A stretch of 64,000 nucleotides of DNA, from the NCBI GenBank assembly GCA_016748015.1, contig JAAOMT010000072.1, positions 7,040-71,039 on the forward strand, in the 5' to 3' direction. The translations under genes were made by a program, and so were the position numbers. Positions 1,294 through 60,540 of the stretch are shown piece after piece. Positions within the stretch are counted from its first letter, which is position 1, and every line of letters begins with the position of its first letter. Source of the DNA: Geosiphon pyriformis uo1. Its lineage: Eukaryota; Fungi; Glomeromycota. Below the pieces are notes generated by a model that saw only the letters and a list, made by a program, of their open reading frames with translations, did no database searches and was not told the origin of the DNA.

Positions 1294-1892
1294 TTATCAC
1301 ATGTATTAGCCAATGATGTCATATAATTAGCCACCCTATTTTTAGATAGTGATCATTGACCTAATCGTTGACCACTTTAGACAGCTATATAAGCGATAAT
1401 TCCCTCAGCTGTAGAAAGACATGATCAAAGTAACGAAATAAACAATATTAATTACTTCCTCTCATAATCGCTTATTCTCCTTTCCTTACCTTCAAGTATC
1501 TACTTGTTGGCATTCACATACCTTATCTTTTTCCCTTCTTGATTTGTATTTGTTAGAATTAACCTGAGAAGCAATTGGCTTGCTCTTGTAATTCATTGAA
1601 TAAAGAAACAATTGAAAAGTACAACAATACCTGTTATTGATTCTAAGAATTGCCGAGTTGAGGCATAGAATAATAGCAGTGGTGTTATCTTGTTGACAAT
1701 CATGGACTATTCTTCTACTTTCAGATTTAAGAAAAGATTAGCAACTGTGATTTTTATGAGACTGATCACGCACATTGAATTCCTACTTATTCAATTTGCT
1801 CCCTTATTGTAATTTCTTCTTTGTTTATTTCCATCACCATACAATACTGTTCTCCCTTGCTATCCATTAGCTTGTTACTCCAACCTGTAACA
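1263..1892 (+). repeat. Family A 3' LTR (A1)
   Basis: tgttatggttgaaac...ccaacctgtaaca, with gctatataag TATA-like box. It matches the other family A LTRs and is closest to 50885-51582. Confidence 0.95.
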
Positions 1893-4114
1893 CTACTTTT
1901 GCTACCTAATGTATTAAACATATCTAATTCATACATCTTACTCATAATGCATACAAGTTCATGACTACTTTTAACAAGACTGGTTATCCACTTAGCAGTC
2001 TGATCTGGATCGGACTTGATATTAGAGGATTGAACCTCCCATAACTCCATCATTGCATCAAATGTATCATCATAGACTAAAAAATCTTTAGCATCACTAT
2101 TATCATCATCATTATCATCATCATTATCATTCATGTCTTCATCATCAGATATGTTATAGTGTATCTTCCCACTCCTCAACTTGAGGGCCCCTACTTCCTT
2201 TTGCAGCACAGAAGCCACAGCACAAACAGCCTTAATTTGGTTTCCCAATCCAATCACACTTTCCTTCATTGCCTCTGCCATAACTGGTGGAGTAAACAAC
2301 AACAACGTAGTAACCAATGCAACCAAAGAACTCACAGGCTCAACTATAGATTTGATCAACAAAGACAGTTCACCAAGTTGGGTTTCCAGAGAAGCCAACC
2401 TAGCATTAACAGCAACATCTGAACCAGAAGAGGCAACCGGCAATAGCAGCACCACAACTTTGGGGGAGGTACTGAAAGCCAGACCCGTATTAGTAGCAGC
2501 AGCAACAGGAGGAACCACAGAAGTGGCGGCTTTGGCATAGGATTTAGCTCCAATGAGAGATGACTTGAAAATGATGGGACCACCAGCAGAATTAGAAGAG
2601 AGTTTGGGAGGGAGAGGTGGCAACACCTTGCAGTCCACAGCCAAATGATCTAAACTTTGACATCTATAGCAGTGACGACATCCAGGAGTTTCCCACCAGA
2701 TGCAAGATACCAGTTTTTGAAACAGCAGCGTTCAATGATTCCAAAGAGCCAAAGGTCACCACTGCAAAGCATTGACGTCAATAGGAATCAGGGGAGCGGG
2801 GAATGAAACACATACGGCCACCAACTTGGGAGACCAGATCACTTATCTCAAATGCAGTGCAGCCAAATGGAAGATTAACCAGCTTAGCTTTGAAAGCATC
2901 TCTTGAAGAGATAACCTCCAACACAGACCAGTTAGAGAGAGCAGCAGCAGCAGAAGAAATGTCCTTAAAGTTAACCACAGCATATTGCCATAAGCCAGCA
3001 GGCTTCAACTTAACAGAAGTGACAACACCAAAAATGCCAAGAGCAGATTTGATGTCATCAGAAGAGGCACCCAAGGGTACATCACACAGTGCAACTGACA
3101 AAAAAGGGGAAGAAACAGAGGCCACTCCTGAAGACCGTGCAATCTTAAGAGTGGTTAAAAAAACCTCATTACCAATGGCCACTTTGGTAGCACCATTTAG
3201 ACACTCCTGAGATGCAAATTCTACACAGAACAACTTGACCATCTCGTGAAACAGATTTAAGCCCAATACAACCAGGCATCAACTGAAACAAAGAACTGAG
3301 CAAAGCCATCTTAATCTTAAACGTAACACCAGATACAAGATTAGAGGCCACCCAATCAGAGAACCTTTGACGTCCATTCACATTCACCCAAGCACTAGCA
3401 TCAGATGCACCAGAAACTGGGGGGGGGAACAGTTGATTCCATTTCCATCTGATCAGCCCAATCTTTGAGATCATCTGGATTGATGGACTGTTTTGCTACT
3501 GGGATTGGCGATGATCTGCCAAAGAGTACCACATCAGGCAACACAGCCAGTGGTTGATCTTGGCCCATCTTGGGAGATGTGCCACTGCTGTTGCCATCCA
3601 TATCAGGAATAGGGCTGGCTGCTGCTGTGGAAGATCTCATCTGGAACCACAAAGGAGTTCAGTGTGACCATGGCAGTTGCAACTGCCTGCTGCTGTTTTT
3701 TGGGATTTTTTGCTTTTGTGGCCATTTGTGAAGCAGTAGTAGTAGAAGTAGTAGTGGGAGTGGTGAGAGCAGGAAAAACCAACTTGTTGACTGGTCTGTT
3801 ATTAAAAATTTTTGGGCTCTTTGAAGTGGTAGAGACAACACTAGGACTAACTCAAGTGTGCCTTTTTGAAGGGACTTTGACTGGAGAAAAACTTCCAGCC
3901 AAAGGAGAAGAAAATGAACCAGAAGCCGCTAAAGGCAGCTTATTATTTTTTAAAAGAAATGTTGCCAGAATGTTTTGTCTAGCTGCTTCAATAACAGAGA
4001 GATCCTCTTATGTTGAAACTTTATTAGTTACTATAGGAAAAGTAACGTTTACAACTTTTTTACTCTTAGCTCTATTCGTGGTTATGAAATTTAGGAGAGA
4101 AAGAGTTTTTTTTT
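1893..4114 (-). mobile_element. ORF1-only non-LTR element copy 1 (5' end intact, 3' tail displaced outside the window by A1)
   Basis: Colinear with 19010-21290 and has the same 5' terminus aaaaaactctttctctcctaaattt. ORF fragments 1787-2644, 2778-3266, 3169-3474 and 3401-3652 encode the RRM/CCHC protein. Confidence 0.9.
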
Positions 4115-4197
4115 GTCTTTTTTTTTTCCCAAAAATTCCATTAAGGCAGAGTAGTTGTCCAAGTCCATTATCGTGTTTAATTGTAAGAGAATTACTA

Positions 4198-9053: not shown

Positions 9054-9137
9054 TTACTATAGAAAAAGTAATGTTTGCAACTTTTTTACTCTTAGCTCTA
9101 GTCATAGTCATAAAATTTAGAAGAGAAAGAGTTTTTT
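9054..9137 (-). mobile_element. ORF1-only element copy 4, 5'-terminal 84 bp (remainder displaced by A2)
   Basis: Matches 21207-21290 and encodes MTMTRAKSKKVANITFSIV. Confidence 0.88.
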
Positions 9138-9148
9138 GTCTGCATCTT

Positions 9149-13004: not shown

Positions 13005-15669
13005 GTGTCTGATAACAATGTTAACAGTGAAGTGACAACAGTCACGCAAAGAAGTACAAGTGTAGAAACTATTGATAGTGAAAATTAAGTGGAAGGGAAC
13101 ATAACTTCTACTGCTGAAGGAGAAGACATTAATGCTAATTCATGAAATTCATCAACTGTGAAAACTGCCAGACCTATTACACCTTCATTTAGATTTGAAA
13201 CTATTGTTATGGTTGAAACTCATAGTTTTTATTAGTTATTACATGTATTAGCCACTGATGTCATATAATTAGCCAACCTATTTTTTTGATAGTAATCATT
13301 GACCTGATCAATGACCTGACCGTTGACCTGATCATTGACCTGATCATTGACCTGGTTGTTGACCACTTTTCATAGCTATATAAGCAATGAGTCTCTTAGT
13401 TGTAGAAAAGTATGTTCCCAACAATCAAAGAAATATAATAAAACAACTTTCATCTCAAACATTCTCTTATCGCTAATTTCTCTTTCCCTACTTTCAAGTA
13501 TCTGAACATCTTTTGGATAAAAGATCTCTTGTTGGTGTTTATCTGCCTTTTCCTGAAATGATTAAACAAAGTATTTGAAGATTATTAAATAAAACGTGAC
13601 TGAAGAGCACATTTAATACTTGATATTGAATTCTAAGAGTGCTGATGTAAGGCATAGAATTATACCAAGTGTGATCATTTGTTGACAGTATGGACTATCC
13701 CTCTACCTTCAGATTCCCCAGTTACCTTTGAAAAGTATAATGACTGAGATATTTTATGAGACTGATCTTGCGCATTGAATCCATACTTATTCAATTTGCT
13801 CTTTGAAGTTGAATTCCCCTTTGATTATTTCCATCACCCTACAATTCTGTTTTCCTTTGCTATCCATTAGCTTGTTACTCCAACCTGTAACACTATCAAT
13901 AGGCCATTTGGAAGTGTGAACACAAGTAGTGGAGATGATACACCCTTTAGAATAGCCAACACATTGAAAAGAACAGCTCCACATAGGAGAGCAGCAGACT
14001 TTTCTCTGATAACAGCTAACAAATTAGAGGAAAAGGCCAACAAAAAATACAGACACATTGAAAGATTAAGCGTAAAAGAGCTAACTAAGAAATTCACCCA
14101 AATATCTAAAGAAGACTTACCCAAAACCACATCTGTTTGAATCTATCACTTTGTCTTGCAGCCAATGTTCAACAAAAGAGGAAATAGTAACAAATTTCAA
14201 ATGGAAGCTTGGACTGATGAAAAGGGAGCCTCAAAGTCTCTGAAAAAAATGGATGGATCATTCAAAGTGCCTAAAGAAGACAGAAACAGAGCTGCACAAA
14301 TAGAAACAGCTCTGAGAAAGTGCAATCCTGATATTTTAGACAGAAGAAAGTCTGCATTAGAGAATGAAAAACAAATGGACAATTCATTTGACACAAACAG
14401 AGATAAGCCTAATGCAAATAATGTCACAGAAGACATGGAAGACTCTGAATTAAGCCTTTCAAGCAGAATGGCTAGTCCAAGTCCAGAACAATACAGTAGT
14501 AGGTTACTTGGCAAAAAACCCATGCTTATGAAAGCAAACCAGAAGGAAGGATGGAAAATGGTGGTCCATGGGACCAAAAGGCATGTACTTTTTGTACAAG
14601 CATTAGATATATTTGAAAAAATCATGGGGCTGCTATGAAAGAATTTGGTGAGGTCAAAAAAATCCAAATCAGAGTGGCTGGCAAATGGCAATCAGCTGTG
14701 GTTGAATATAACAACCAAGAAGAAGCAACAAGAGCTATAGATCAATGGTCGACCATGATCAGAAAAGATGTGGTCAGAATTTACCCAATGATTGGAACCC
14801 AAAAGATTATTGAGCAGAGAAAAACCTGGGAAGCTAAATTGGTGGGCCTACCACAGAACTGTACTGCTTACTATTTGAGCACCACTTTGGATCAAATCAG
14901 AGCCTGATCCTGCTTCATCCCAAAAACTAGTAAAAATTACACAAGGATGGGCTGTGCTTATGTAGGATTTGACAGTAAAGCTAGCCACAACAATGCCACT
15001 AAAAAGCCCTTGGTAATTGGTGACACACTGGTCCACTGGGTGCCTACTGATGCTAAAGAGTGCCACTTCTGTTACCAGGTAGGACATTTGGTCTCAAAAT
15101 GTCCAACCCTGCATAAGAAGAAAGAAGGAGATACCAAGAAAGTTACCAACAATATTAGATTGGCAAAACTGTATGTTAAGAGGAATGTTCCAGAGGAAAA
15201 CATCAAGGCCTTTGGTGGAAGATCATATGCTGATATGGCTGCACTCAGACTGCCCCATAACCGGAACAACACCAATCCAAACAATACTCAGAAATCTGGT
15301 CCACAAGTGAACAATAGGGAAGAACAATCAAAAAAAGGAGTTAACCAACCATGGAAGAGTGAAATTGATGAACTAAGACAGCAGGTTAATGAAATGGTGA
15401 AACTGCTGAATGCAGTTGCTGCCAAAGGTAAAAAAGTAATAGTTACTCAACAGCCAAGTTACACCTCAGAAGAAAAAGAAGTGATAAAAATTGGGTTACC
15501 AAGCCAAAGTACTACATTGAAAGAGGCATACAACCCAGAATTAGAAATCAAAGAAATTAAAAAAACTTTGGAACCCATTCTGGAGTTACTAAAGCAAGTG
15601 AAAAAACAGAGTAGCTGGAGCAGTTCTACTACTGAAGAATCTAAATCTATGGAAACAGATGATGTGTAA
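13005..15669 (+). pseudogene. LINE ORF1 (two RRM-like domains, CCHC knuckle, probable coiled coil), interrupted by a solo LTR and stops
   Basis: EFGEVKKI...WQSAVVEY, AKLVGLP...AYVGFD, CHFCYQVGHLVSKC. The start position is approximate. Confidence 0.85.
13205..13892 (+). repeat. Solo LTR, family A, 4-bp TSD CTAT
   Basis: ctat at 13201-13204 and 13893-13896. Removing it restores ORF1 RFETINRPF. Same subtype as 9972-10658. Confidence 0.95.
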
Positions 15670-18600
15670 CACACTTGATTCCAACATAGAACAGAACTAC
15701 TCCAATAATGACACTTGGAAAATTGGTACTGTTAATATTAGAGGGCTTAATAATCCTGGTAAAGCTGAAGAGGTGCTACATTGGATTATTGAAGAACAAT
15801 TTGACTTTGTGATTGTTACAGAAACTAAAATGACTCCAACAAAAGAGAAGAGTGTATTTTTTGGTTTTGATGAATATCATGCCTTTTGGAAATCAAGTAC
15901 AGAGAAACAAATGGGAACTGGTGTTAGTATACTAATCAAAAAATGTTGGATACACCATGTAGAAACAATTAAGGAGTTTCATGAGAGATTATTGCATTTG
16001 GGGTTGAAATTTAGAGGAAGAGTCAGTGTGCACATAGTAGAACTGTACATGCCTGCTTCCAAAGTGCCTACTGAGGGAGCAGTAGCTAAAGAAATCAGGA
16101 AACTTTTGGTAGACATTGTACAGAACAAAGAGATTATCATAGTTGCAGGCAATTTGAATGAAGATCTGTCATCCAAGTCACTTGAGGAAACATATGCTGC
16201 AAATAAGGCCAAAGCTTGTCCAATTGCTGCAACATTACAACATATGAATTTAGTGGATACACATGGAGCATATGCAACAAACAATCCAGAAAAGACATGG
16301 GCATCAAATGGTATACAAAGAAGATTGGACTATGTGTTTACTAATGCAGTTACAGCCTCACTGGTCACAAACATTGGGGTGTTTGATGTTAATAAATCTT
16401 TTAACACAGATCACAAAGCAGTAGTAACAATCATCTGATCTGATAGAATCTTGGCAGGCACTAAAAAATCTAGATCTGGAAGGAAGAAGTGTAGCACAAC
16501 TATGATTAATATTAGAAAAGCATCTGGGATTCAATAGGAGATCTATGCAGATAAAGCACAAAGAAAATCAATAGATAACAGCAATGATGATCTAAACCAG
16601 ATGTGGCTTACAATCAAAGAGACTGTGTTATAAGCTGCTGAGTGCCTACTGAAAAGGAAAGTGGGAGCCCAATCTGCACACACAAAGAAAGAATGCATAG
16701 ATCACAAGCTTGTTAAGATTGTTGCTGATATAATCAAACTAATAAGAGTAAACAATGCAGATATGCATGATAACAATGTTATGCAGTTGTTGGCCAAATG
16801 GAAACAGCTGAAACCTAAGGCAGTTAATGCGTATCTGATGACTTTTCCAAATAATAAGCTAATCATGGAATTACTTAATATTAAGAAAGAATACAGATCA
16901 ACACTGCAAGCTAGGATCAGGCTACAACAGCAAAGACAGATAGTGGACAATATTATTAGGAGACAACAAAACTTTGATCTAAACAAAGGAGCTATGATCA
17001 AAAGCATCATGAACAGAAAAAGATAAAGAATTGTACTAGACTATGTAATTGAAGAAGGCGAATTTCATGATGATCCTGATGAAATTAAAAAGCTAGTAAA
17101 CAGAAAAGCCCAAGGGTGGACCAGAACAAGAAGCATTGAGCCTAACCTATGGAAAAGTTGGGAACACAGATTTAAGCCAATTGAAAGCATTCCAGACCAT
17201 GCCTTTGATAGTGTAATGAATGAATTAACAAATGAGAAATTTGAACACATATTGAGCCACACACCCCATAACAAAGCTCCTGGCCCATCAGGCATTCAAG
17301 CTGAACTCTGGAGGAAGGCTGGGCCTAATACCAAGTCTAAACTGAAAACATTGCTCAATGCTTGCATTAAAGCAGCAAACATGCCTGAAGAGTGGAGAGT
17401 AGCACAAGTTATACTGATTCTAAAGCCAAAAAAATGGGGTGGCAATATTGACATCACCAGACTGATCACACTCATTGAAAGCACCAGAAAAATCTTAACA
17501 AAGATTCTAACTGCTAGGATATCAAAAGCATGTGAACTCCACAATGTCCTAAAAGATTACAATACCTCTGTATTAAAGAATACCTTTACAGCAGTGCCTA
17601 TTCATGTGATTAATGCTGTAGCTGAACATGTAAGAGAATTTGATAAGGAGGCTTGGTTTACATTTCAGGACATGAAAAAGGCATATGATTTAGTGGGATG
17701 GAAACCCATGGAAGCTGCACTAAAAAGAATTAAGATGAACAATAGGTTTACTGAGCTGTTTGGCTTGATGCACAACAATAGAAGCAACAGGATCATAACT
17801 GAATTTGGGTTAAGTGATAAATATCAAGTAAAAAATGAACTGGATCAGGGGGAAACAAGCTCACCCATTATGTCGAGAATTTTCTACGACCTCTTACTGT
17901 GCAAAGTAAAACAAGCCAATTATAGTTAGGGATACAAACTGACAGCAGCATGGAAAAAGTGGGATAATCAATCAGATACACAATCTCTGTTGGTGTCAGT
18001 AAATCACCTAGCCTTCGTCAATGACACAGTGTGAATAGCTAACTCAAGACAAGGAATACAAAGTATTTTGGACACAGCCAGCTCCTTTTTTAGAATAGTG
18101 AATATTGAGATCAACTTAGATAAAACTGAGACAATGGTGACCAGACCCTCCAAAGGGAGATTTTTGATGGTTGAGCCACTAAAATTTGGTCCAGATAAAC
18201 AAATCTTGAAATTGTTGGATCCATCTACATGTACCCAATATTTGGGAGTATGGATCAGAACAGATGGGAAAAATGAGACTGTTCTAAAAATAATAGGATC
18301 TGACATTGAAGCAGTGTGTGCAGTCATCAGGAAAAAACACATAACTGAGAAACAGGCCATTTACATTTTTAACAGTGTACTCAGTCCAGCTATTGAATTC
18401 AGATTTTAGTTGACTTATATTCCTAATAGCTGGGCTAGAAAATGGACTTCAAAGATTTTGGCCACTGAAGAAAAAAGCAAAACTTTCAGTAGATTTCTCA
18501 GCCAGTGCCATGCATTACTCATCCTTGTATAACCTGTTCAAAATTGATGATATACAAGCAAAAAGCAAGATCACAGATTTGTTAGTTAAATTGAACAGTG

Positions 18601-18860
18601 CTGATATTGCTGGAATGGCTACAAAAATCAGACTAGCCAACTTGCAGGTACAGAGATGATCAGCTCATAGTATACTTGAATATCCCACTAATGAACAATC
18701 TAAGCCAGAGGTTAATCTTATAGCAAACATTATACAGATGATGGAAAAAAGAGGCATCTCATTCAAGAGCAATGGTAACACACATGGAATACCTGAATCT
18801 TTAAGACCACAGACATATTTAATTGAGTCTATCTTACCTTCAAGTGAAACCTATATTAAA

Positions 18861-21290
18861 TTTTTTTTTTGTTAATGTGTAGCCACACTGATTGTTTATT
18901 AGTTAAGTCAACAGTAATGTAACAGTTTCATAAAGCCAGCTCACCCAATATTACAAGAATTACAAGATGTGGCTAACCACAGATGAAAAGTCCTAACTAC
19001 ATGCTAGTACTACCTATGCTACCTAGTGTATTAAACATATCTAATTCATACATCTTACCCATAATGCTAACAAGCTCATGACTATTCTTAACCATACCAC
19101 TCATCCACTTAGCAGTTAGATCAGGACTGGATTTGATACTGGATGGCTGATCTTTCCATAAATGCATTATAACATCGAATGTGTTATCATAGACAGAGAA
19201 ATCTTTATCTTCGATATCATCATCATCATCATCATCCATGTCATCATTATCTGACACATCTTCCAAGCAGGCCCATTCACATTTTTTTTCCAGGCATGTC
19301 AATCTTTTCTGCATCACAATAGCAATGGCAGCCAGGCCTTTATTCTGCCCAGCCAATCCAACTACACTTTCCTTAATAGACACATCCACAGCAGGTGGAG
19401 TAGGCAACAATTTGGTAACTAAAACAACCAGAGCACCAACAGGCTCAACCAAGGATTTTATCAGCAAAGATAGTTCACCAAGATGGGATTCCAGAGAAGC
19501 CAACCTAGCTTTGACAGCATTATTGATAGCAGAAGGAGCAATAGGCAACATGAGTGTAGTAGTTGGAAGGAGACCACTGAGATCCAAGTTCATATCAGCA
19601 GCAGCAGCAACAGGAGGAACCATGATAGCAGCAGCTTTAGCATAAGATTTGGATCTAGCAAATGAGGATTTGAAAACTTTGGGGCCACCAGAGAAGTCAG
19701 AAGAGACTTTGGGAGGAAGAGGTGGGGACACCTTGCACTCTAAAGCCAAATGGTCCAGACTTTGACACCTATAGCAGCAGTGACATTCAGGAGTTTCCCA
19801 CCAGATGCGACAGCCACATAAGGTACCAGTTTTAGAAACAGCAATGTTCAAAGATTCCAAGAAATCAAAGGTAACCACAGCAAACCATTGACATTGATAA
19901 GAATCAGGGGAGTGGGGAATGAAACATGTATGGCCACCAACTTGGGAGACCAAATCACTTATTTCAAATGCAGTACAGCCAAAGAGAAGATTGACCAGCT
20001 TAGCTTTGAAGATATCTCTTGAGGAGATAATCTCCTTTTGGTTGGTAATGGGAAGAATCTTAACACTGTCTTTTCTGACCAAAACAGACCAATAAGAGAG
20101 AGCAGTAGCAGCAGAAAAAGTGTCCTTAAAATGAATCACAGCATATTGTCATAAGCCAGCAGGCTTTAACTTAACAGAAGTGACAACACCAAAATTGCCT
20201 AGAGCAGTTTTGATGTCATCAAAAGAGGTACCTAAAGGTACATCACACAGTGCAACTGACAGAAAGAGAGAAGAAACAGAGGCCACACCAGAAGACCATG
20301 CAATCTTAAGAGTGGTCAAAAAATTCCCATTACCAATGGCCACTTTGGTGGCACCAGTTAAACTCTCCTGAGATGCAAATTCCACACAGAACAACTTAAC
20401 AGCATCTTGTGAAACTGACTTAAGCCCAATACAACCAGGCAGCAGCTGAAACAAAGAACAAAGAAGAGCCATCTTGATCTTGAATGTGGCACCAGGTATT
20501 AGATTGGAGGCCACCCAACCAGAGAACCTCTGACAACCATTCACATTTTCCCAAGCACTACCATCAGCAGCACCAGAAACTGGGGGAAGGACAGTTGATT
20601 CCATTTCCATCTGATCAGCCCAATCTTTGAAATCATCTGGATTGATGGACTGTTTTGCTACTGAGATTGGCAATGATCTGCTGGAGAGTACCACATCAGG
20701 CAACACAGCCAGTGGTTGATCTTGGCCTATCTTGGGAGATGTGCTGCTGCTGTTGCCATCCATATCAGGAAGAGGGCTGGCTGCTGCTGTGGAGATCTTA
20801 CTGAAGATCTCATCTGGAACCACAAAGGGGTTCAGTGTGACCATAACAGTTGCGACTGCCTGCTGCTGTTTTTTGGAATTTTTTGCTTTTGTGACCATTT
20901 GTGAAGTAGTAATAATAGAAGTAGTAGTCAGAATGGTGAGAGCAGAAAAGACCAACTTGTTGACTGGTCTGTTATTAAAAATCTTTGGGCTTTTAGAAGT
21001 AGTGGAGACAACACTGGGACTAACCCAAGTGTGTCTTTTGGAAGGAACTTTGACTGGAGAAGAACTACCAGCCAAAGGTGAAGAAAATGAACCAGAAGCC
21101 GCTAAAGGCAGCTTTTCACTAATATTTTTTAAAGGAAATGTAGCCAGAACGTTTTGTCTAGCTGCTTCAATAACAAAGAGACTCTCTCATGTTGAAACTT
21201 TATTAGTTACTATAAGAAAAGTAACATTTGCAACTTTTTTACTCTTAGCTCTATTTGTGGTCATGAAATTTAGGAGAGAAAGAGTTTTTT
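18861..21290 (-). mobile_element. ORF1-only non-autonomous non-LTR element copy 2, full length (2430 bp), poly(A), 17-bp TSD
   Basis: TSD gtgaaaccta(t/c)attaaa at 18844-18860 and 21291-21307, poly(T) 18861-18870, and no EN/RT coding. The 3' tail is homologous to the LINE tail. Confidence 0.95.
18997..21264 (-). pseudogene. Single ~755-codon ORF1-like protein (Ser/Pro-rich N-terminus, RRM-like domains, CCHC knuckle, coiled coil, acidic tract) with two premature TGA stops
   Basis: ATG 21264, ORF 20149-21075 and ORF 18997-20139 are all in one frame. Knuckle is CYRCQSLDHLALEC. It aligns by eye to the LINE ORF1. Confidence 0.9.
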
Positions 21291-23263
21291 GTGAAACCTA
21301 CATTAAAGTTAGAAGCTTACTAAGAAAGAAAAACATGTTGTATTTGCATCAGATACAGAACAAAGATGAGTCATTGATGACATGGATGAACTTCACAAAG
21401 AAGTACAGACAAAACAATAGTGGTAAAATTCCCAGATGGTTTAAGATTTTAGAATCTACAATCATTATGGACGAGTACAGAAACATTGATGTAGCACAAT
21501 GTAAGACATTGGGTATGCACATACTGACTAACCAAATACCAGATGATTTAGAAACAATGGAAAGAGACACTATTTATATCCATATCCCTGACACTTTACT
21601 ACCACAATGGAAGTGTGTATGAGAGAAGTTAAGACTCAGAAAAGAAATAGAAATATCAACAGATGGCTCACTGGTAAGAGCTGGTTCTGAGGAAGCAAGA
21701 GAAGCAGCTGCTTTTATAACACATAGGATAGAGGCCGAATTTGGTATAGCAATTGATGAAATATTATCATTGACAAAAGCAGAGGCAAAGGCTGTGTTGC
21801 TAGCTTTGAAAGCAGTACCTTACAGATGCAAACTAACAATAAACACAGATAGTCAAGCAGTGATGACAACGGCTCAAAGATGGTTGTCCAAAGATTCTCC
21901 TCTGTCTATTAAAAATCAGCTCAAAACTTCAAACTGGCATACATGGAATGCAATCAGAGTGATAATAAGGGAAAAGAGGATTGATCTCAACATGAACAAA
22001 GTGGCTAACAAACTAGCCAAAAGATCTACTACTCTTGATACAGTGAGGTGGGCCTACAATGCTAAGGAGACTGCATACATTCCTGTTTGTGGAGAAGTTG
22101 AATTGGATCTAAACATCAGGCATTTTCTGAACAAACAGGCTAGTCTTCAATCAGCTTTAGACTGGATAGGCAACAACAAAGTCCAAGAGACAATAGGATC
22201 TTTAGACCAAGATATAGACTGGATATGCACAACCAAGATTTGGAACTGGGATAAAAAGATGTCATCTGGCTTCATCTCAGCTGGTTCTTCAGCAATGTGC
22301 ACATTTATTATGAAATCATTTCACAACATGCTGCCAACAGCAGAGGTGCTATACAACAGACATTTCCATGTATACCTGAATAATCTTTGCAAGACATGTC
22401 ACAGGGAAGTGGAAACCAACCAGCACTTTTGGGAATGCTCTCTAAATACCCAAGAGGGCAAGACACTGATTGATGATGTAAAAGATAAGTGGATACAGTG
22501 CCTTTCAGAGGCTGTAAAAAGGGGACGTGAAACCCATAATACTGATGAGAAGATTATACTGTCTAATGAATACATCATGTCAACGTCTAACATAGATCTG
22601 CTATGTAAAGGACTAATTAATAAGCAATTTGGAAGGATCAATGCTTTTTCTGACATTGACCTAAAGACTAGCAATAATATATTAATTAAGGTGTGTAAAT
22701 GGGCAGTTACTTAAGCAAGGAATAGATTGTGGGGAGAACATTGCAAATTGCAAACTGAATGAGAAAAAACAATAGGTATTGATAATAGGGTCAAGAGAAA
22801 TCCAACTGTTGGTTCCAGTATACATAGCACTTCAAGAAATAGTGGTAAAGATAATGGCAAACCCATAGTCAAAATAGGTGATGTTTCCACACAGTGTAAT
22901 GGTATACTGACTAATGTTTTTTGTGGTAGGAGTACTTTGTATAATAGTGTGATACCCCATAGATTTTTTGGTTATACTAGCATGTAGTTAGGCATAACCA
23001 CTTAGTGGTTAGCCACATCTTGTAATTTAGATTATTGGGTGAGTTGGCTTTATGAAAAAGTCATGCTTTTTAAGTGTAGCTAAACTAATAAAAGACCAGT
23101 GTGACTACACATTAACAAAAAAAAAAAAAAGGAAAAAATTAGTTACAGAACTTATACTTATGCAATCTGATTTGGATTAACTTTTTATCCTCCATACTGA
23201 TGTATCCAGCTATAGACTTGGTGCTGTTCTCTTCCAAAAAAATAAAAATGACAAGAAACATAC

Positions 23264-26200: not shown

Positions 26201-28269
26201 AGCATTAAAACAGATATGGAAGTATCTGAAGCAAAAGAGTACATTATCATTGTTGGTAATGAATGGCTTAAGAAAGCCAAAGCACTACTTGACTATGAAC
26301 TTTGTGAACTAACCATCAGATATGGTGAGAAACATTGTGGTTAAATGCTGACATTGGACAACTCCTCCAGTACCCAAGCAGAACCAAGAAGAAGAACAAT
26401 CAGATAAATCAGATAATGATGAGAGCAATGATGAAGAAGATCAAGAAGAACCAGAAGAAACTGCTGAACTCGCTTATACCATCTTTACCAGCAATGGCAA
26501 GCCATTAGACAATGTTAAAGCTGACAAAGAAGGAATCATGGTAAATGGCAAGCTGATTTGCTGGCCCTACTATGATATCCTCAGAAGAACCTTTGACAGA
26601 AAACCTGGCAAAAAAGCAAAATACAGTTATTGGTGGCATGGTCCTTGGGCATGGTGCTGGTGTAATAAACTTTTGTATTCACCAAGTGATGAATACAAAT
26701 CCTGCCTAATCTACTATGAAGATTGGAAACCAATTAGCTTGATACCTCAAGAAAAACTTAAAGAAGTACAAAACTCTTTTGAGAATGAACCACCTGAAAT
26801 CCAATCACTAGTTGTAGAACAAAGAGAACCTTCCCCTAAAGAAAGAAAAGTGGACATTGAAAATCTGTTGGCTAGGAATAGCCCAGTTATCTCAAAAGAA
26901 GGTAATGCCCCTGGACAAACCCATGTAATACAACACACCATCACCACCAAAGAAACTCGCCCCATCTATTTGAAGCCTTATCAATCCAATCAACACAATA
27001 ATGAGTTTATCAAAAAAGAGATAAACTGGATGAAAGATCTTGGATTCATACAAGAAACCAAGAGTGAATGGGCTTTCCCAGTTGTAGTGGTATCCAAGAA
27101 AGGTGGAACCCTACACTTCTGTGTTGACTACTGCCATCACTATAAGAAACATGTACCTACTCCCCAAAATTGATGCAATGCTAGATAAATTCAATAGTGC
27201 TGCTTTCTTCTCAACCATTGATTTAACTACTGGATTCTGGCAAGTAGAGATGGATCCAGAAAGCAAAAAGAAAACTGCCTTTATCACCAAGTATGGCACC
27301 TATAAATTCACAGTCATGCCTTTTGGTCTCAACACCTAATAGATAAAGTGTTTAAATCAGTAAAAAAAAACTTTGTTCTGGTTTACTTGGACGACATAAT
27401 GGTATATTCAAAAACCTGAGATGAACACCTTGAACATTTACAGAAGGTTTTTGACCTGCTCAGAAATGCTGGCCTTAAGATCAGCCCAATCAAATCTTTC
27501 TTTGGATGCCAATCCACCCAATTTTTTGGTCATTTTGTTACAAAAAATGGAATTTTTCCTGACCCAGCTAAAGTTGAAAAAGTTCAAAACATTAGACAAC
27601 CAATGAATGTTCCTGAACTATGCTCTTTCTTTGGTTTGGCCTCTTACTATTGCAAATTTATCAAGAATTTCACCAAAATTGCCTTTCCTTTCAATCAGCT
27701 ACTCAAAAAAAATGTCAATTATCACTGGAGCACTCATCAACAAAAAGCTTTTGAATTTTTGAAGGAAAAACTTGTTCTTGAACCAATTCTCAAACAACCT
27801 AATCTTGACCAACTTTTTATCCTCCACACTGATGTATCTGGTTATGGACTTGGTGCTGTCCTTTTACAAAAAGATGAAAATGGCAGAAAACATGCCATAG
27901 CATATGCCAGTAGATCCCTCATACCAGTAGAAATAAACTATTCAGTTATTGAACAAGAATGTCTAGCAGTAGTTTGGGCTACCAACTACTGGGATCAATA
28001 TTTTCTTGGTGCAAAATTCTTAGTGGTAACAGATCATCAAGCCTTGGTTTGGCTGCATAAGAAAAAGAAGCTAGAACACAAAAAAATAACTCACTGGATA
28101 CTCCACTTGGATGAATTTGACTATGATATTCAATACTACAAAGGAGCAAATCATCAAAACGCCAATGCTCTATCTAGACTGACAGTACAACCTCTTAAAC
28201 CAAACCAACTTAATTATTAGTAACTCCTTCATAAACAAACACAATAATGGACTTAGACAACTACTCTGC
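23264..28269 (+). mobile_element. Gypsy family A copy A3, 5' part (LTR 23264-23959, PBS, gag, PR, RT, RNase H)
   Basis: ORFs 24012-24605, 25338-25547, 25631-26344, 26538-27173 and 27603-28220. It ends at the inversion breakpoint. Confidence 0.93.
25535..25577 (+). promoter_or_regulatory. Candidate -1 programmed ribosomal frameshift signal (T TTA AAC + 5-nt spacer + hairpin) at the gag/pol junction
   Basis: The heptamer is in X XXY YYZ phase two codons before the gag stop, and the -1 frame is open into the protease ORF. Conserved at 6888-6894 and 35629-35635. Confidence 0.8.
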
Positions 28270-29541
28270 TGGCTTATGGCAATATGCTGTGGTTCATTTC
28301 AAAGACACTTTTTTTGCTGCTGCTGCTGCTCTTATTTACTAGTCTGTGCTGGTTAAAAAAAACAGTGTTAGGATTCTCTCTGTTGTTAACCAAAATGATG
28401 TTATTTCTTCAAGAGATGCTTTTAAGGCTAAGTTGGTTAATCTTCTTTTTGGCTGTACTGCCTTTGAGATAAGTGATTTGGTCTTCCATATTGGTGGCCA
28501 TACATGTTTCATTTCTTGCTCCCCTAAATCTTACCAACATTAATGCTTTGTTGTAATTATCTTTGATTCTTTGGAATCTTTGAATGCTGTTGTGTTAAAA
28601 ACTGGTACCTTGCGTAGTTGCCACATCTGGTGGGAAACTGCTAGATGTCACTATTGCTACAGATGTTAAGACTTGACTCATTTGGCTGTGGACTGCAAGA
28701 AGTTACCTCCTTTTCCATCCAAACTAATTCCAACACTTCTGGTGGCCCCAAAATTTTCAAACTTTCATTTGCTAGATCAAAATTTTATGCCAAAGCTACT
28801 GCCTTTGTGGTTCCTTCTGTTGCTGCTGCTGCTAATATGAACTTGGATCTCAGTAGTCCCCCCAAAACTACAACACCTATGTTGCCTGTTGTCTTTTTTG
28901 CTCCCAATATTGTTGTTGAATTTAGGTTAGTGAACTGTCTGTGTTGATAAAATTTTTGGTTGAACCTGTTGATGCTCTGGTTGTGTTGGTTACCAAATTG
29001 CTGTCTACTCTATCTGCTGTGAATGCATCAGTTAAGAAATGTGTGGCTGGGTTGGCTAAGCAAAATAAAGGCTTGGCTGCTGTTGCTTCCATAATGCAGA
29101 AAAAAATAACACATCTTGAGAAAAAATGTGAGTGGATCTGCTTGGAAGACACATCTGATAATAATGACATGGTTGATAATAATGACAATGATGATAAAAA
29201 ATTTTCAGTCTATAATAACACCTTTGATATTATGATGTATCTTTGGGAAGATCAGCCTTCCAATATCAAATTCAGTCTTAATTAGACTGCTAAGTGGATG
29301 AGTGATATGGTTAAGAATAGTCATGAGCTTGTTAGCATTATGGATAAGATATATGAATTAGATATGTTTGATATATTAAGTTGCAAAGGTAGTACTAATG
29401 TGTAGTTAGGGCTTTTCACTTGTGGTTAGCCATATTTTGTGATTTTGTATTATTGGGTAAGCTGACTTTATAAAAGTGCCACATTACTGTGGACATAACT
29501 AATAAATAACTGGTATAGCTACACATTAACAAAAAAAAAAA
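28270..29541 (+). mobile_element. ORF1-only element copy 3, 3' half with poly(A) (inside the inversion)
   Basis: Starts at GLWQYAVVHF and ends ctacacattaac(A)11. The TSD follows at 29541-29554 in inverted orientation. Confidence 0.92.
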
Positions 29542-31107
29542 CCTTGGGTTTTTCTTTCTAATTCCATGCACTATTTGGATATCAAGATAGGAGTTCTAAA
29601 TTTAGTTTCAAACCAGATTATGAAAGAAGTGTTTTCTTTTTCAGTATTTGTTAGTGTTTATATAATAATTTTTTGGTGAGCACTAGCATTGGTTTTTTGT
29701 AAAAACCAAGTAGCAGGAGAGTCTTGGAAATAGCCACCAATAATTTAGAACTTGTACTCATTATCATATTGATTGGCAATAGCTGTTCTTTCAAAATCAT
29801 CTAACCAATCAATTAGGTCTTGTGTATTACCTTTAAATAAAGGTAGTGGTGTATTATTTCTTTGCTCTAAAGCAGTTTGTATGCTCTAGAGGGCGATCAG
29901 AATGTTTTGTTGTATGTGGTTATTAGCCATTAGTTCAGAAGTAGCTGTTTGTATAGAATGTTTTGATTTACTTAAGAAGAGATCAAAAACAAGAGCAGTT
30001 TGATAGCTTTCTTCTTCTGTTTCAAAGAGTGTTTCAGCTAACTGATGGGCAGCAATCCAAATGTAAATTTGGTAATTTAGGTATTCAGAATCAGGAAACT
30101 GTTGTTCAAAGGTTGTGAAGTATAAAAGCTGATTGATACTGTTGTTTTTTTCTTCAAAGTTGTCTTTAAAATAAGCTTGGTCAAAGTAATAGATTGTATA
30201 GGCTGTATAGGTTTCAGCTAAATGCTTGTTCAAAAACTAGTTCCAAAAGTCTTGGAATTGTCTGCTGGATTGTTCTTCAATGGGAAAGCAAATCAAGCAG
30301 GAAGGCAAAAGATTGAGTTTAATAAAGTCTAGATTGTTTTTGTTGTGTGCTTTAAAGTATTCTTTTAATTGTTGTGGCAAGTATGAATAATCACCTATAC
30401 AATAAAAAACAAAGTGGATTTTGACAACCTTACAGAGAGCACCACTTTTATGTTATAGGTTAAAATAACAAGCTAATGGATAGCAAGAGAAAACAGAATT
30501 GTAGGATGATGATAGGAATCAAAAAAAATTCAACTTCAAAGAGTAAATTGAATAAGTATGAATTCAATATGTGAGATCAGTCTCATAAAATATCTCAGTT
30601 GCTATACTTTTCAAAAAATAACTGGGGAATTTGAAGGTAGAAGGATAGTCCATACTGTTAACAAATGATAACACACTGGTATAATTCTATGCCTCATGTT
30701 GGCACTCTTAGAATTCAATATTAGGTATTGGATATACTCTTTAGTCATATTTTATTCAATAATCTTCAAATGCTACAATTACACATTTCAAGAAAAAGAT
30801 AGGGAATAACCAACAAGTAATTTTTTATCCAAAGATGTTTGAATACTTAAAGGTAGGAAAAGAGAAATTAGTAATAAAAGAAGGATTGAAATAAAGTTGT
30901 TATTTTATTTCTTTAATTCTTACATGCTTTTCTACAGCTAAGAGATTCATTGCTTATATAACTATCAAAAGTGGTTAATAATCAGGTCAATGGTCAGGTC
31001 ATTGATCAGATCAATGATCACTATTTAAAAATAGAATGGCTAATTATATGACATTAATAACTAATACATGTAATAATTAATAAGAAGTATAGGTTTCAAC
31101 TATAACA
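29542..31107 (-). mobile_element. Gypsy family A copy A4, 5' LTR (30451-31107), PBS and gag start (inside the inversion)
   Basis: LTR, PBS and gag ORF 29886-30233. Gag continues at 34932 on the + strand. Confidence 0.9.
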
Positions 31108-31183
31108 ACACTACTATTAAGCATTTCTGTTTAATAACTAAATAGTTTTGTTCTGCTGGTAAAAGTGTTTTACTTGCATATAC

Positions 31184-33784
31184 TGTTACGAATTGGAGTA
31201 ATAAGCTAATGAATAGCAAAGGAGAACAGGATTGTAGGATGATGAAAGGAATCAAAGGGAATTCAACTTCAAAGAATGAATTGAATAAGTATGAATTCAA
31301 TGTGTGAGATTAGTCTCATAAAATATCTCAGTCGCTATACTTTTCAAAGATAACTGGGGAATTTGAAGGTAGAGAAATAATCTGTACTGTCAACAAATAA
31401 TCACACTTGGTATAATTTTATACCTCACGTCAGCACTCTTAGAATTCAATATCAAGTATCAAATGTGCTTTTCAGTCACATTTTATTCAATAATCTCCAA
31501 ATGTTGCAATTATACATTTCAGAAAAAGAGTAAGGAATAACCAACAAGTAATCTTTTATCTTTAAGATGTTCAGATACTTGAAAGTAGGGAAAGAAAAAT
31601 TAGCGATAAGAGAAGGATTGAAATAAAAGTTGTTATTTTATTTATTTGATTTCCTTGATTTCTTCATACTTTTCTACAGCTAAGAGATTCATTGCTTATA
31701 TAGCTGTCAAAAGTGGTCAATAATTAGGTCAATAATCACTTACTAAAAATAGAATGGCTAATTTATATGACATCAGTGGCTAATACATGTGATAATTAAT
31801 AAGAAGTATAAGTTTCAACTGTAATATCATCCTCTCCAAAAAGATTGAGCTCTGGCAAAATTAAGCTATTTATGGTGTAATCTATTGGAAAGGTTTTATC
31901 TAACTCAAATCTAACTAGTTTGTTGAAGTCTTTTGTCGATAAGATATATAACACTTGAGGTGAAATGAGTTTTGTATCCAGAAGACCAAATCTTTGTATT
32001 AGAGTTTTGGCTCTTCTAGCAATAGTTAAAACTCTTGAGACATCTAACTGTATAATGCCCAAAATTTCTGCCTGTATCTCTGAAGTTGTTTTCTTCATAA
32101 GTTTCATATCCTCTATGATTTCACCAAGGTGACCATAGAGTTCTAATTGTCTTCCATATGACAAGTTTTTGTCTATGGATAAGATTTCTTGAAGTGTTTT
32201 TCCAATTGTGTTGGAAGGTAAGAGTATAGCTGCTGTTATACTTTCAAACAGATATTTATCCATTTTACTACCAATTTTTTCTCTTCTGGTAGTGGTTTTC
32301 TTTGGTTTAATAACAGTATGTGTTCCACTGTTATCAGTTATGGTGGTTTGTTTTCCAATGGTCAGAGTAGCATTTGGATAGTTTTTGATCCAATACTTAT
32401 GAAGAGTATAGAAAGCATTTTGAATGTTTTGATCTAGAAAATAATTGTTTATATTGATTGAAGATATCTCTGTTTTGGGAATAATGCATTTATTTATACT
32501 TGATTTTTGCTGATCATTTGAGTCGGTATTACCATAACAGGCAGCCAATCAAGTCATTTATGATATTTCTTGAGTTGTGTACCATAAACAGAATGATTAT
32601 TGAAGATTGTTCTGGATTGATCTTGAAGAATATAAGAATTATTGTTCAAAACTTTGTTAACTATAAAGGGTTCTTTCTACTGGTTAGAGAATTTATCACC
32701 ATAAACATTGTCTCTATCTGAACAGTATTCCAATACCAAGTTACCAACACTTAAAGAAAATGTTTTATAGGTTTTCTTTTTCTTAAGTTTTTCTTGGAAC
32801 TGTTTTATCTTTTCAAAAGCAATTATTCGTGCTTCTACTAAGGAGTCAAGAATGGTACCAAGTCTTTTTTGCAAAATGTCTTTGTAATTTCCTATTGTGA
32901 TCTCTTCAAAGAGTATTGTTTCAATATTAGTTTTTATTGGTAGTGTTGCCATGTGTCCATAAAGCAGATAAAAAGGTTTATAACTTGTTATGTCATGATT
33001 CACAGTTCTATAAGCAAACAATGCTGAAGGCAGTACTTTGTTCCATAAATTTGTTTCTTTACTGGTTTTGGCTAGAATTTCACATAATGTTCTATTGAAA
33101 TGTTCTACTAGGCCATTTGTTTGGAGGTGATAAAAGGAGAAAAGTTTATAATGTATTCCCATTTTTCTACAAAGTTCTTCAACTAGTGTACTGAAAAAAG
33201 CTTTTTTTCTATCAAATAAAAGTTTTTTAGAGCAGCCATAATGGCAGATAATATCTTTATAAATAAAATTGGCTATTGAGACTGCTGTTTGTTCTGAAGT
33301 GGCTCTTGTTTTTACCCACTTTGTAAGATAGTCGGTAGCTGTAATAATATATCTGTTGCCATCAGGAATAATTGTTAAAGATCCAACAACATCTATACCA
33401 ATTCTGTCAAAGAGTTGACCAACAGAAATTGGATGGATGTCTTCTTTGCAATTGGGTTTGCCTCTTCTTTGGCAGATGTCACAGGTTTTAATGTATTCAG
33501 CAATGTCTTTTTCCAAGGTAGGCCAATAATAACAAGCTAAAGTTTTTTGAATTGTTTTTGTTTTTCCAAAGTGTCCAGCTAATGGGTCAGTATGCATATT
33601 ATATATTACAATTTTTCTTTCTTCAAATCTGATAACTCTTTGGGAGCAGTCAGAATTTTTTCTGTTTCTTTTATATAATTGGTTCTGGTGGATCAAATAA
33701 AAATTTGATTGTTTGTGCAAATGTTTTTTTTGCTGTTGAGTGTATTCAGGTGGGTATTGTCCTTTACCCAAAAATTTCATTAAG
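31184..33784 (-). mobile_element. Gypsy family A copy A3, 3' part (integrase, ORF3, PPT, 3' LTR 31184-31826; inside the inversion)
   Basis: Integrase lies within ORF 32677-33969. The LTR shares diagnostic variants (ttgaaacttatac, taaattagcc, agtaagtgat) with 23264-23959. Confidence 0.92.
31796..32548 (-). CDS. Family A ORF3, uninterrupted reading frame, unknown function
   Basis: 250-aa open frame, homologous to 542-1293, 11356-11676 and 39955-40209. The likely start Met is mutated in this copy. Confidence 0.7.
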   Translation of the reverse strand: MAACYGNTDSNDQQKSSINKCIIPKTEISSININNYFLDQNIQNAFYTLHKYWIKNYPNATLTIGKQTTITDNSGTHTVIKPKKTTTRREKIGSKMDKYLFESITAAILLPSNTIGKTLQEILSIDKNLSYGRQLELYGHLGEIIEDMKLMKKTTSEIQAEILGIIQLDVSRVLTIARRAKTLIQRFGLLDTKLISPQVLYILSTKDFNKLVRFELDKTFPIDYTINSLILPELNLFGEDDITVETYTSY

Positions 33785-34915
33785 GCAGACTTTAACTTGA
33801 CAGAAGTGATAACACCAAAAATGCCAAGAGCAGATTTAATGTCATCAGAGAAGGTACCCAAAGGTACATCATAAAGTGCAACTGACAAAGAGGGGGAAGA
33901 AACAGAGACCACACCAGAAGACCATGCAATCTTAAGAATGGTCAAAAAAACTTTATCACCAATGGCCACTTTGGTGGCACTATTTAGACTCTTCTAAGAT
34001 GCAAATTCCACACAGAACAACTTGATAGCATTTCATGAAACAAATTTAAGCCCAATACAACCAGGCAGCAACTAAAACAAAAAACTAAGCAAGGCCATCT
34101 TGATCTTAAATGTAGTACCAGATACAAAATTGAAGGCCACCCAACCAGAGAACTTTTGACAACCATTTACATTCTTCTAAGCACTACTATCAGCAGCACC
34201 AGAAATTGGGGAAGGAGCAGTTAATTCCATTTCCATCTGATCAGCCCAATTTTTGAGATTATCTGAAATAATGGGCTGTTTTGTTACTGAGATTGGCAAT
34301 GATCTGCTGGAGAGTATCACATCAGACAACATAGCAAGTAGTTGATCTTGGCCTATCTTAGAAGATGTGCCACTGCTGTTGCCATCCATATCAGGAAGAG
34401 AGCTGGCTACTGCTGTGAAGATCTTACCAAAGATCTTATTTGGAACCACAAAGGGGTTCGATATAACCATAGCAGTTGTGACTGTCTGCTACTGTTTTTT
34501 GGAATTTTTTGCTTTCATGGCCATTTGTGAAGTAGTAGAAGTAGTAGTAGTAGTGGAAGTAGTGAGAGTGAAAAAAACCAGCTTGTTAACTGGTTTGTTA
34601 TTAAAAATTTTTGGGCTTTTAGAAGTAGTAAAGACAACACTGGGACTAATCTGAGTATGTCTTTTGGAAGAAACTTTGACTGAAGAAGAACTACCAGCCA
34701 AAGGTGAAAAAAATGAACCAGAAGCCATTAAAGGCAGCTTTTCACTAATATTTTTTAAAAAAAATGTAGCCAGAACATTTTGTCTAGCTGCTTTAATAAC
34801 TGAAAACCTTTTTTATGTTGAAACTTTATTAGTTACTATAGGAAAAGTAACATTTGCAACTTTTTTACTCTTAGCTCTAGTTGTGGTCATAAAATTTAGA
34901 AGAAAAAGAGTTTTT
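33785..34915 (-). mobile_element. ORF1-only element copy 3, 5' half
   Basis: Same 5' terminus as the other copies and ends at VKLKSA. The TSD partner gaaaaacccaagat is at 34932-34945. Confidence 0.92.
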
Positions 34916-34931
34916 ATGCTGAAATCAAGCT

Positions 34932-60124: not shown

Positions 60125-60540
60125 ATCCATTGATTCAAATCCCTGTATTTTTCTTGCTGTTATCTCTAATTCTTTCCTATTTTCTACTGAAACTAACTAA
60201 GCTATTTTCACCAAAGGCAGAAATATTGCCTGTGCTATCCTTTCATTTGGCTCTATAACATAGACTTTTTCTGAGTCATTTTGTAACATAGCAATGATAT
60301 TTCTTACATATCCTGCATCAATTATTCTTCCTCTGATGTTTATTCCCTTTTTCGCTAAATTACTTCTAGATGCTAATTGAACCATTGTTGTTGCTGGAAT
60401 TTCCAGTGCTATTTTCAGATTGATGCAAGTGTGCGAATGGGATTCCAATTTGATGGCATTCTTTCCTGGATATCTCAGATCAAATCCTGCATCAGTATTA
60501 TGTACATGTTCTGGCATGATATCTTCATTATTATTACTGA
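60125..60540 (-). pseudogene. dUTPase, family C2
   Basis: DAGFDL, ASRS, IIDAGY, ERIAQ and, after a stop, QGFES(M)D. These correspond to the five dUTPase motifs. Confidence 0.93.

Follow-up and report, generated by a model that had tools for sequence, protein, structure and literature searches.

The fungus Geosiphon pyriformis carries a family of repeats of about 2.4 kb, here called family A, which we interpret as protein-coding, non-autonomous retrotransposons of the non-LTR class (LTR, long terminal repeat), of the HAL1/HeT-A kind, moved by the enzymes of a long interspersed nuclear element (LINE) that we call LINE-A; we give this interpretation a probability of about 0.75. The stretch under study, below called the window, comprises 64,000 nucleotides (nt) of contig JAAOMT010000072.1, and a full-length family A copy, the focal element, occupies its positions 18861-21290. 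We found a retrotransposed insertion, a protein homologous to the product of the first LINE open reading frame (ORF1), a uniform layout with neither endonuclease (EN) nor reverse transcriptase (RT), and a selected, independent lineage, which is what characterizes an ORF1-only element. A sister family with the same layout, family B, is present in the same genome.

The focal element and its insertion site

The element and the LINE-A copy that surrounds it are made up as follows (window positions; TSD, target-site duplication).

18861..21290, minus strand: full-length family A copy (ORF1-only element), 2,430 nt, from self-BLAST; 40 genomic copies match positions 1-2430 contiguously
21291..21307, strand not applicable: 5' copy of the TSD, tttaatgtaggtttcac on the element's strand; eight other LINE copies have a single copy of this site, without the element
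21265..21290, minus strand: 5' leader, 26 nt, beginning AAAAAACTCTTTCTCTCC, a terminal motif common to LINE-A (AAAAAACTTTTTTTTCTCTC) and family B
18997..21264, minus strand: ORF1-like open reading frame (ORF), 755 codons and stop (ATG at 21264-21262, stop at 18997-18999)
18871..19009, minus strand: 3' tail common to the element and LINE-A, predicted to be structured, 80% identity to 22975-23126, starting at the last three codons (T-S-M-stop)
18861..18870, minus strand: poly(A), ten bases
18844..18860, strand not applicable: 3' copy of the TSD, tttaatataggtttcac on the element's strand, from end reading and empty-site alignment
13892..18860, plus strand: left part of LINE-A, from Pfam and genomic copies; 5' end truncated at 13892 by an LTR terminus; about 250 bp deleted near 14628
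about 14141-15666, plus strand: LINE-A ORF1 remnant with a CCHC knuckle (Pfam)
15602-16435, plus strand: LINE-A APE endonuclease (Pfam)
17027-17926, plus strand: LINE-A RT (Pfam)
21308..23130, plus strand: right part of LINE-A, with 3' untranslated region (UTR) and poly(A) after ORF2, to about 23130
21623-22711, plus strand: LINE-A RNase H and zf-RVT (Pfam)
22975..23126, plus strand: LINE-A 3' tail homologous to the element's tail (self-BLAST and alignments)

When the element and one copy of the TSD are removed, the joined flanks align without a gap over 300 of 300 positions with eight other LINE-A copies, at 92 to 94% identity. This is a true empty site, and it proves that the element inserted into ORF2 of the window's LINE-A, as the preliminary description of the window had proposed when it spoke of a copy that disrupts a LINE ORF2. 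The duplicated target, tttaatRtaggtttcac, is 17 bp long with one mismatch.

The ORF of the focal element contains two in-frame stops (21187-21189 and 20149-20151) and no frameshift, and is followed by a 3' UTR of about 126 nt between stop and poly(A). Pfam detects no EN or RT domain in the element, and its two ORF halves give no Pfam match at E <=0.01, so that the initial account of a single ORF of about 755 codons without EN or RT holds, with the two stops as an addition. The domain calls reported below for family A come from members less decayed than the window copy. Neither a tRNA nor an Rfam family was found in the focal element; this, its length of 2.43 kb and its 755-codon ORF led us to reject a short interspersed nuclear element (SINE).

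LINE-A has the layout of an I/Tad1-type LINE, with an ORF1, an ORF2 encoding APE, RT and RNase H (Pfam families Exo_endo_phos, RVT_1, RNase_H and zf-RVT) and a poly(A) tail, an assignment made from domains. Its ORF2 frame ends in RFFGYTSM and a stop at 22985-22987, after two decay stops that are Q and W in another copy. Full-length LINE-A copies begin with AAAAAACTTTTTTTTCTCTC; the window copy stops short of that start.

Relation of the element to LINE-A

Similarity between the element and LINE-A at the DNA level is confined to the last 149 nt (18861-19009 against 22975-23126, 80% identity), and begins at the T-S-M-stop codons that end both the ORF of the element and ORF2 of LINE-A. By tblastn, LINE-A ORF1 is 27% identical over 291 amino acids (aa) to the protein encoded by the C-terminal half of the ORF of the element (E = 5e-22). 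The strongly diverged alignment to the neighboring ORF1 that had been reported is thereby recovered, and the peptides quoted in its support are present, with small copy-specific differences. The first bases of the element are also close to the LINE-A start. From the DNA, protein and 5'-end comparisons, the unit therefore combines a 5' terminus like that of a LINE with a strongly diverged ORF1 and with the final ORF2 codons and 3' UTR of a LINE-A-type RNA.

The tail is predicted to fold consistently into several helices (RNAalifold on 29 tails, and single-sequence folds). One of its hairpins is conserved in sequence between the element and LINE-A. The stem of a second hairpin varies, with four or more different sequences, yet the hairpin forms in 24 of 27 tails (single-sequence folds only); two family A copies, L018 and L022, carry the LINE-A version of it.

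Family A copies in the genome

A search of the 128-Mb G. pyriformis assembly with the element gave 1180 first-look candidates, the best 40 of which were scored; for a search with the C-terminal half of the ORF, the 107 best-scoring matches were scored. Of the scored copies, all 40 in which both ends are present match positions 1-2430 without interruption, at 80 to 92% identity. Exact TSDs of at least 9 bp flank 15 of 27 full copies, compared with 7 of 702 mismatched control pairs, a frequency far beyond chance. None of the 107 ORF matches lies in an open frame of more than 775 aa, and therefore no fusion of the family A ORF with an ORF2, and no ORF2 in frame after it, was seen. The scored copies are thus contiguous units, as had been anticipated, rather than independent deletions of a longer element with ORF2 between ORF and tail.

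Family A copies are on average 83.5% identical to one another and form clear subfamilies in a tree. The sampled LINE-A copies have a mean pairwise identity of 93.4%, and older LINE-A copies, at 79 to 86% identity to the window copy, also exist. We found family A inside LINE-A copies and LINE-A inside family A copies; because the nesting goes both ways, the periods of activity of the two must have overlapped.

At the 5' junction, between the upstream TSD and the first base of the element, 7 to 27 extra nucleotides were seen in ten copies (L004, L012, L014, L015, L019, L021, L024, L026, L028 and L029) and, in the window, at 34916-34931. They vary from copy to copy, and look like untemplated or template-jump additions.

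In copies L001-L030, C>T and G>A changes make up about 58% of the differences from the majority state. CpG is nearly absent from family A (12 CG in 2.4 kb), and C is affected in any context. This suggests that deamination, or a decay resembling repeat-induced point mutation, acts on these repeats.

The 120 best protein matches to the element's ORF are all hypothetical proteins of G. pyriformis. Well over a hundred decayed copies of family A, family B and LINE-A are annotated as hypothetical genes (G9A89_*), and some of these gene models appear to skip stops via predicted introns.

Selection on the open reading frame

Substitutions were assigned by parsimony to the branches of a tree of 27 family A copies. 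Internal branches represent change in the active source lineages, and terminal branches represent decay after insertion. In the true frame, internal branches carry 628 non-synonymous, 413 synonymous and 12 nonsense changes, and terminal branches 1849, 737 and 85, respectively. Non-synonymous changes are thus depleted internally (Fisher p = 1e-10), as are nonsense changes (p = 0.002), and third positions are in excess on internal branches (p = 8e-7). In the two control frames, the ratio of non-synonymous to synonymous changes shifts the opposite way. These counts speak against an ORF evolving neutrally, an outcome that would have undermined the first interpretation of the element. Between families A and B, the ratio of non-synonymous to synonymous substitution rates (dN/dS, Nei-Gojobori) comes to 0.47 overall and to 0.23 for the RRM/CCHC part; the neutral decay in the two compared sequences pushes both values upward. 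On this evidence, purifying selection on the family A ORF appears to be real, of uncertain strength.

Probable helper and mobilization

Family A encodes neither EN nor RT and must therefore have obtained both in trans. LINE-A is indicated as the helper by the common tail, the common 5' terminal motif and the co-localization of copies, and its ORF2 protein (ORF2p) is the most likely source of the two activities. Concerning co-localization, 58 of 106 family A matches lie within 100 kb of one of the 31 scored LINE-A matches, compared with 0 of 75 for family B; likewise, 89 of 107 family A matches have another family A copy within 50 kb, the equivalent for family B being 2 of 75. Moreover, nearly every annotated LINE-A ORF2 model has locus tags adjoining those of family A gene models. 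Such clustering fits a shared integration machinery or target preference, without proving one.

The element's life cycle may be pictured as follows. The family A RNA comprises the 26-nt leader, the gene for an ORF1-type RNA-binding protein, the LINE-A 3' tail and poly(A). Insertion took place by target-primed reverse transcription, to which poly(A), TSDs, the empty site and the uniform full-length copies bear witness. EN and RT would have been supplied in trans, most likely by ORF2p of LINE-A. The element's own ORF1 protein (ORF1p), with RRM modules, a CCHC knuckle and a coiled-coil region, would have been kept under selection while the family diversified, and for this reason it probably coated the element's RNA in cis. 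As to origin, a deletion or an RT template switch probably created the unit by fusing an ORF1 end to the final ORF2 codons and 3' UTR of a LINE-A-type RNA, since the homology begins at the last ORF2 codons.

The encoded protein and its relatives

Among the less decayed members of family A, P0008 matches RRM_1 with 34.7 bits (cut-off 20.7) and, weakly, zf-CCHC with 19.0 bits, and P0104 matches them with 25.6 and 17.1 bits. The knuckle residues C125, C128, H133 and C138 are invariant in alignment A1, together with several RRM positions. Family members therefore show the succession of RRM and CCHC zinc knuckle that defines a type I LINE ORF1p.

The intact family B ORF was modeled with AlphaFold2 at low confidence (mean pLDDT 43), too low for a fold search, and for this reason only the secondary-structure pattern of the model is reported. 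This pattern suggests a disordered N-terminal region of about 236 residues, then three beta-alpha-beta-beta-alpha-beta (RRM-like) modules at residues 237-480, and, C-terminal to these, the CCHC knuckle, two long helices (550-629) and a small helical C-terminal domain. It agrees with the RRM-RRM-CCHC reading, without establishing it.

A search of 1.8 billion representative proteins returned 477 matches, and all the close ones that were checked come from Geosiphon; no homologue above about 35% identity was found outside this genus. The nearest outside homologues, at about 33% identity, lie on two metagenome contigs (L053:2584-5047 and L054:637-2801). There, each ORF1 is overlapped by an ORF2 that begins with APE, which is the canonical LINE layout. 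On L053, the RNase H-containing end of an ORF2 lies just upstream of ORF1, so that the LINE copies there are tandem or nested. Within Geosiphon, other gene models in which a 33%-identical ORF1 is fused to APE, RT or RNase H represent LINE families that share only about 25% identity with LINE-A, and no ORF2-linked ORF1 close to family A was seen.

A second ORF1-only family and a possible third

Family B, defined by proteins 35 to 40% identical to the query, is a second ORF1-only element with poly(A), about 2.28 kb long. Its leader is 26 nt long, AAAAAACTCTTTGTCTCCTTAATTTT, its ORF has about 708 codons and starts MTTTRAKSKK (MTTNRAKSKK in family A), and its 125-nt 3' UTR is unrelated to that of family A. 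The start expected for a full-length transcript of intact family B copies is AAAAAACTC. The copies carry poly(A) and short TSDs and are dispersed in AT-rich DNA. ORF end and tail are contiguous in all 40 scored matches (of 702 first-look candidates); ten copies (L031-L040) are 90.8% identical pairwise, and one of them, L033, has an intact ORF (L033:1109-3393). Families A and B share about 67% DNA identity over the first 1550 nt and 49% protein identity. Judged by these comparisons, the ORF1-only layout is common to two old sister families with different tails.

The ends of the ORFs differ in an informative way. The family A ORF ends in the ORF2 codons T-S-M-stop; that of family B ends in FDSV-stop, which resembles the native end of LINE-A ORF1, DDV-stop. 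This fits an acquisition of the family A tail by recombination or template switching.

A LINE with the tail of family B was not found: with the family B ORF end and tail as query, 40 of 40 matches were family B itself, and the C-terminal part of a LINE ORF2, used as protein query, retrieved only LINE-A relatives and no family B helper.

A third diverged ORF1-type protein, P0097, is 53% identical to family B and 42% to family A. Its type has about 5,300 first-look candidates, with open frames up to about 780 aa. It is possible that this family C is also ORF1-only. More tentatively, and with more doubt than confidence, one may imagine a radiation of protein-coding ORF1-only elements in Geosiphon from a single ORF1-only ancestor, in which family A is extinct and clustered with LINE-A, family B dispersed and family C a possible further member, and in which 3' tails were swapped to capture different helper LINEs. 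If so, half-LINEs would be a major self-sustaining class of fungal repeats, and not a by-product of LINE decay.

Alternative explanations

Several observations weigh against the interpretation of family A as an ORF1-only parasite of LINE-A. An intact ORF was found in none of the 30 full family A copies and in none of the 107 scored ORF halves, so that all sampled copies are decayed, and all 11 LINE-A copies examined are broken as well. The mobilization of family A by LINE-A in trans is itself an indirect conclusion, and the co-localization may partly reflect retention in islands of transposable elements (TEs) or segmental duplication; L002 and L003, for instance, are one duplicated locus. Covariation gives weak support to the tail fold (4 of 25 pairs, RNAalifold). 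The selection signal is moderate, being drawn by parsimony from decayed copies whose mutations are strongly skewed to C>T/G>A. Finally, scoring was confined to the best-scoring subsets, so that an autonomous LINE whose ORF1 is of the family A type may have been overlooked.

In a first alternative, the 2.4-kb units are recurrent spliced or internally deleted transcripts of an unsampled autonomous LINE with a family A-type ORF1, and form no independent lineage. The junction lies exactly at the last ORF2 codons, as expected of a precise deletion or splice; scoring covered only 40 to 107 of more than 1000 first-look candidates; and Geosiphon does contain several LINE families with RRM-CCHC ORF1s (P0160, P0189 and P0210). 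However, every ORF2-linked ORF1 that we found is only 25 to 35% identical to family A, none of the 107 family A-type ORF matches extends into a longer frame, the same junction is present in all deep subfamilies, and the sister family B repeats the ORF1-only layout in 40 of 40 copies. We consider this scenario unlikely.

Alternatively, the copies may be processed pseudogenes of a domesticated, ORF1-derived host gene, comparable to L1TD1 in mammals, retroposed by LINE-A, in which case the selection would reflect a host function. A source gene under selection would produce the same contrast between internal and terminal branches, and the short leader (26 nt) is mRNA-like. Against this, the 3' end is LINE-A's own tail from within the last codons and the 5' terminal motif is also that of the LINE; copies number in the hundreds to thousands, in several subfamilies; two or three diverged families have the same layout; and no homologue closer than about 35% was found outside Geosiphon among 1.8 billion representative proteins. 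A host gene thus seems an improbable source.

Independent 5'- or internally truncated LINE-A fragments, dead on arrival, would explain the 3' tail and poly(A) common to the element and LINE-A, and are rejected with near certainty, because the ORF is only 27% identical to LINE-A ORF1, the DNA similarity ends with the 149-nt tail, and all copies have the same 5' end and the same ORF-to-tail junction.

Comparison with known elements

To our knowledge, no non-autonomous retroelements other than ORF1-only LINE derivatives bring a ribonucleoprotein (RNP) protein of their own, and these derivatives are well documented only for mammalian HAL1 and the Drosophila telomeric elements. HAL1 (half-L1) is a long-lived mammalian family that consists of a LINE ORF1 and 3' end without ORF2, ends in poly(A), is flanked by TSDs and presumably relies on ORF2p in trans. 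Family A likewise associates an ORF1 and a LINE 3' end, without ORF2, with poly(A) and TSDs. The term 'HAL1-like' initially applied to it is therefore apt for the ORF1-only kind of element; it stands as an analogy only, the partner not being an L1. As judged by domains, the partner's ORF2 contains RNase H and its ORF1 is of type I, with RRM and CCHC, and we do not classify family A as a HAL1 in the strict, L1-derived sense. In mammalian L1, ORF1p is composed of a coiled coil, an RRM and a C-terminal domain. Family A also differs from HAL1 in its fungal host, in the contrast between its ORF, with about 27% identity to the partner's ORF1, and its tail, with 80%, and in the coexistence in Geosiphon of two or more diverged ORF1-only families whose tails differ.

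HeT-A and other telomeric elements of Drosophila are Gag/ORF1-only non-LTR retrotransposons that depend on the ORF2 proteins of other families, and there ORF1-only lineages can yield further ORF1-only lineages (PMC13534243). The Geosiphon elements are also ORF1-only non-LTR elements without an ORF2 of their own. However, the HeT-A type belongs to the Jockey clade, is specialized for telomeres and forms head-to-tail arrays, whereas the Geosiphon elements are dispersed or clustered, have TSDs and are often nested in other TEs. Their TSDs and their presence in both orientations inside other TEs set them apart from telomeric elements of the HeT-A type, whose arrays stand at chromosome ends and lack TSDs.

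LINE-dependent SINEs share the 3' end of their partner LINE, presumably the site recognized by its RT (PMC5786205). Family A is likewise non-autonomous and ends like its partner LINE, but it is 2.4 kb long and protein-coding, without a tRNA, 5S or 7SL head, and has a LINE-like 5' end rather than an RNA polymerase III promoter.

In fungi, the EKA/AVRk1-AVRa10 family of Blumeria graminis is a large family derived from LINE ORF1, made of truncated or degenerate LINE copies co-opted as effectors (PMC4641428). Family A resembles it as a large fungal family of LINE ORF1 origin; EKA is not, however, a separate unit of ORF1 and tail that has uniform ends and moves as such by retrotransposition. In the searchable literature, Repbase and Dfam not being covered, no fungal ORF1-only retrotransposing family is described, nor is family A itself, which accords with the earlier statement that no fungal example was known. 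A recent TE survey of arbuscular mycorrhizal fungi, which includes G. pyriformis, makes no mention of ORF1 or non-autonomous LINEs (PMC11952901).

Family A is thus a known kind of element in a new kingdom and with a new LINE type, and not a new mechanism. What the fungal system adds is a partner that apparently recognizes a specific 3' tail on its template, the existence of two or three diverged families, and at least one family with an intact ORF. It would provide a natural experiment on the role of ORF1p, on the evasion of cis-preference and on helper switching by LINE parasites. The annotation of Glomeromycotina is also concerned: copies by the hundreds have been called as 'hypothetical proteins' (G9A89_*), inflating gene counts, and family-level TE annotation in this group has not separated ORF1-only elements from LINEs.

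Other repeats in the window

Apart from the focal element, the window contains the following family A sequences.

1892..4111, minus strand: second copy, 81% identity, its 3' tail removed by the end of an LTR element
9054..9139, minus strand: 5' fragment of 86 nt, 88% identity (self-BLAST)
33785..34915, minus strand: third copy, 5' half, with TSD cttgggtttttc and 16 extra nt at the 5' junction
28266..29540, plus strand: third copy, 3' half, inverted relative to the 5' half, with poly(A) and the matching TSD cttgggtttttc

Self-BLAST thus places the four copies (1892-4111, 9054-9139, 18861-21290, and 28266-29540 with 33785-34915) where they had first been located, and confirms that they share a 5' end, all four starting with AAAAAACTCTTT. 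Poly(A) and TSDs of 14 to 17 bp had been claimed for two of them. Poly(A) is present in both, and the 17-bp TSD of the focal element falls within that range, one mismatch included, but the TSD of the split copy is only 12 bp long.

The two halves of the third copy meet at the same position of the element and both carry the 12-bp TSD cttgggtttttc, and therefore derive from one insertion, as had been thought. They are in opposite orientations, so that a simple insertion is rejected: an inversion of about 5.5 kb (28266-33784) later split the copy. CTGC microhomology is present at the inversion joints. Of the two breakpoints, one is within the element, and the other within LTR-element sequence that is uninterrupted at 4112-4160.

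A single type of LTR terminus (reading outward TGTTACAGGTTGGAGTAACAAGC...) cuts both LINE-A at 13892 and the family A copy at 1892. It lies in the window at 13600-13891 and 1700-1891, and the same repeat adjoins LINE-A copies at L050 and L052. Further along, on the minus strand at 60200-61066, a dUTPase domain (Pfam E = 2e-14) lies inside a Gypsy-type LTR retrotransposon, beside the protease and gag regions of that element.

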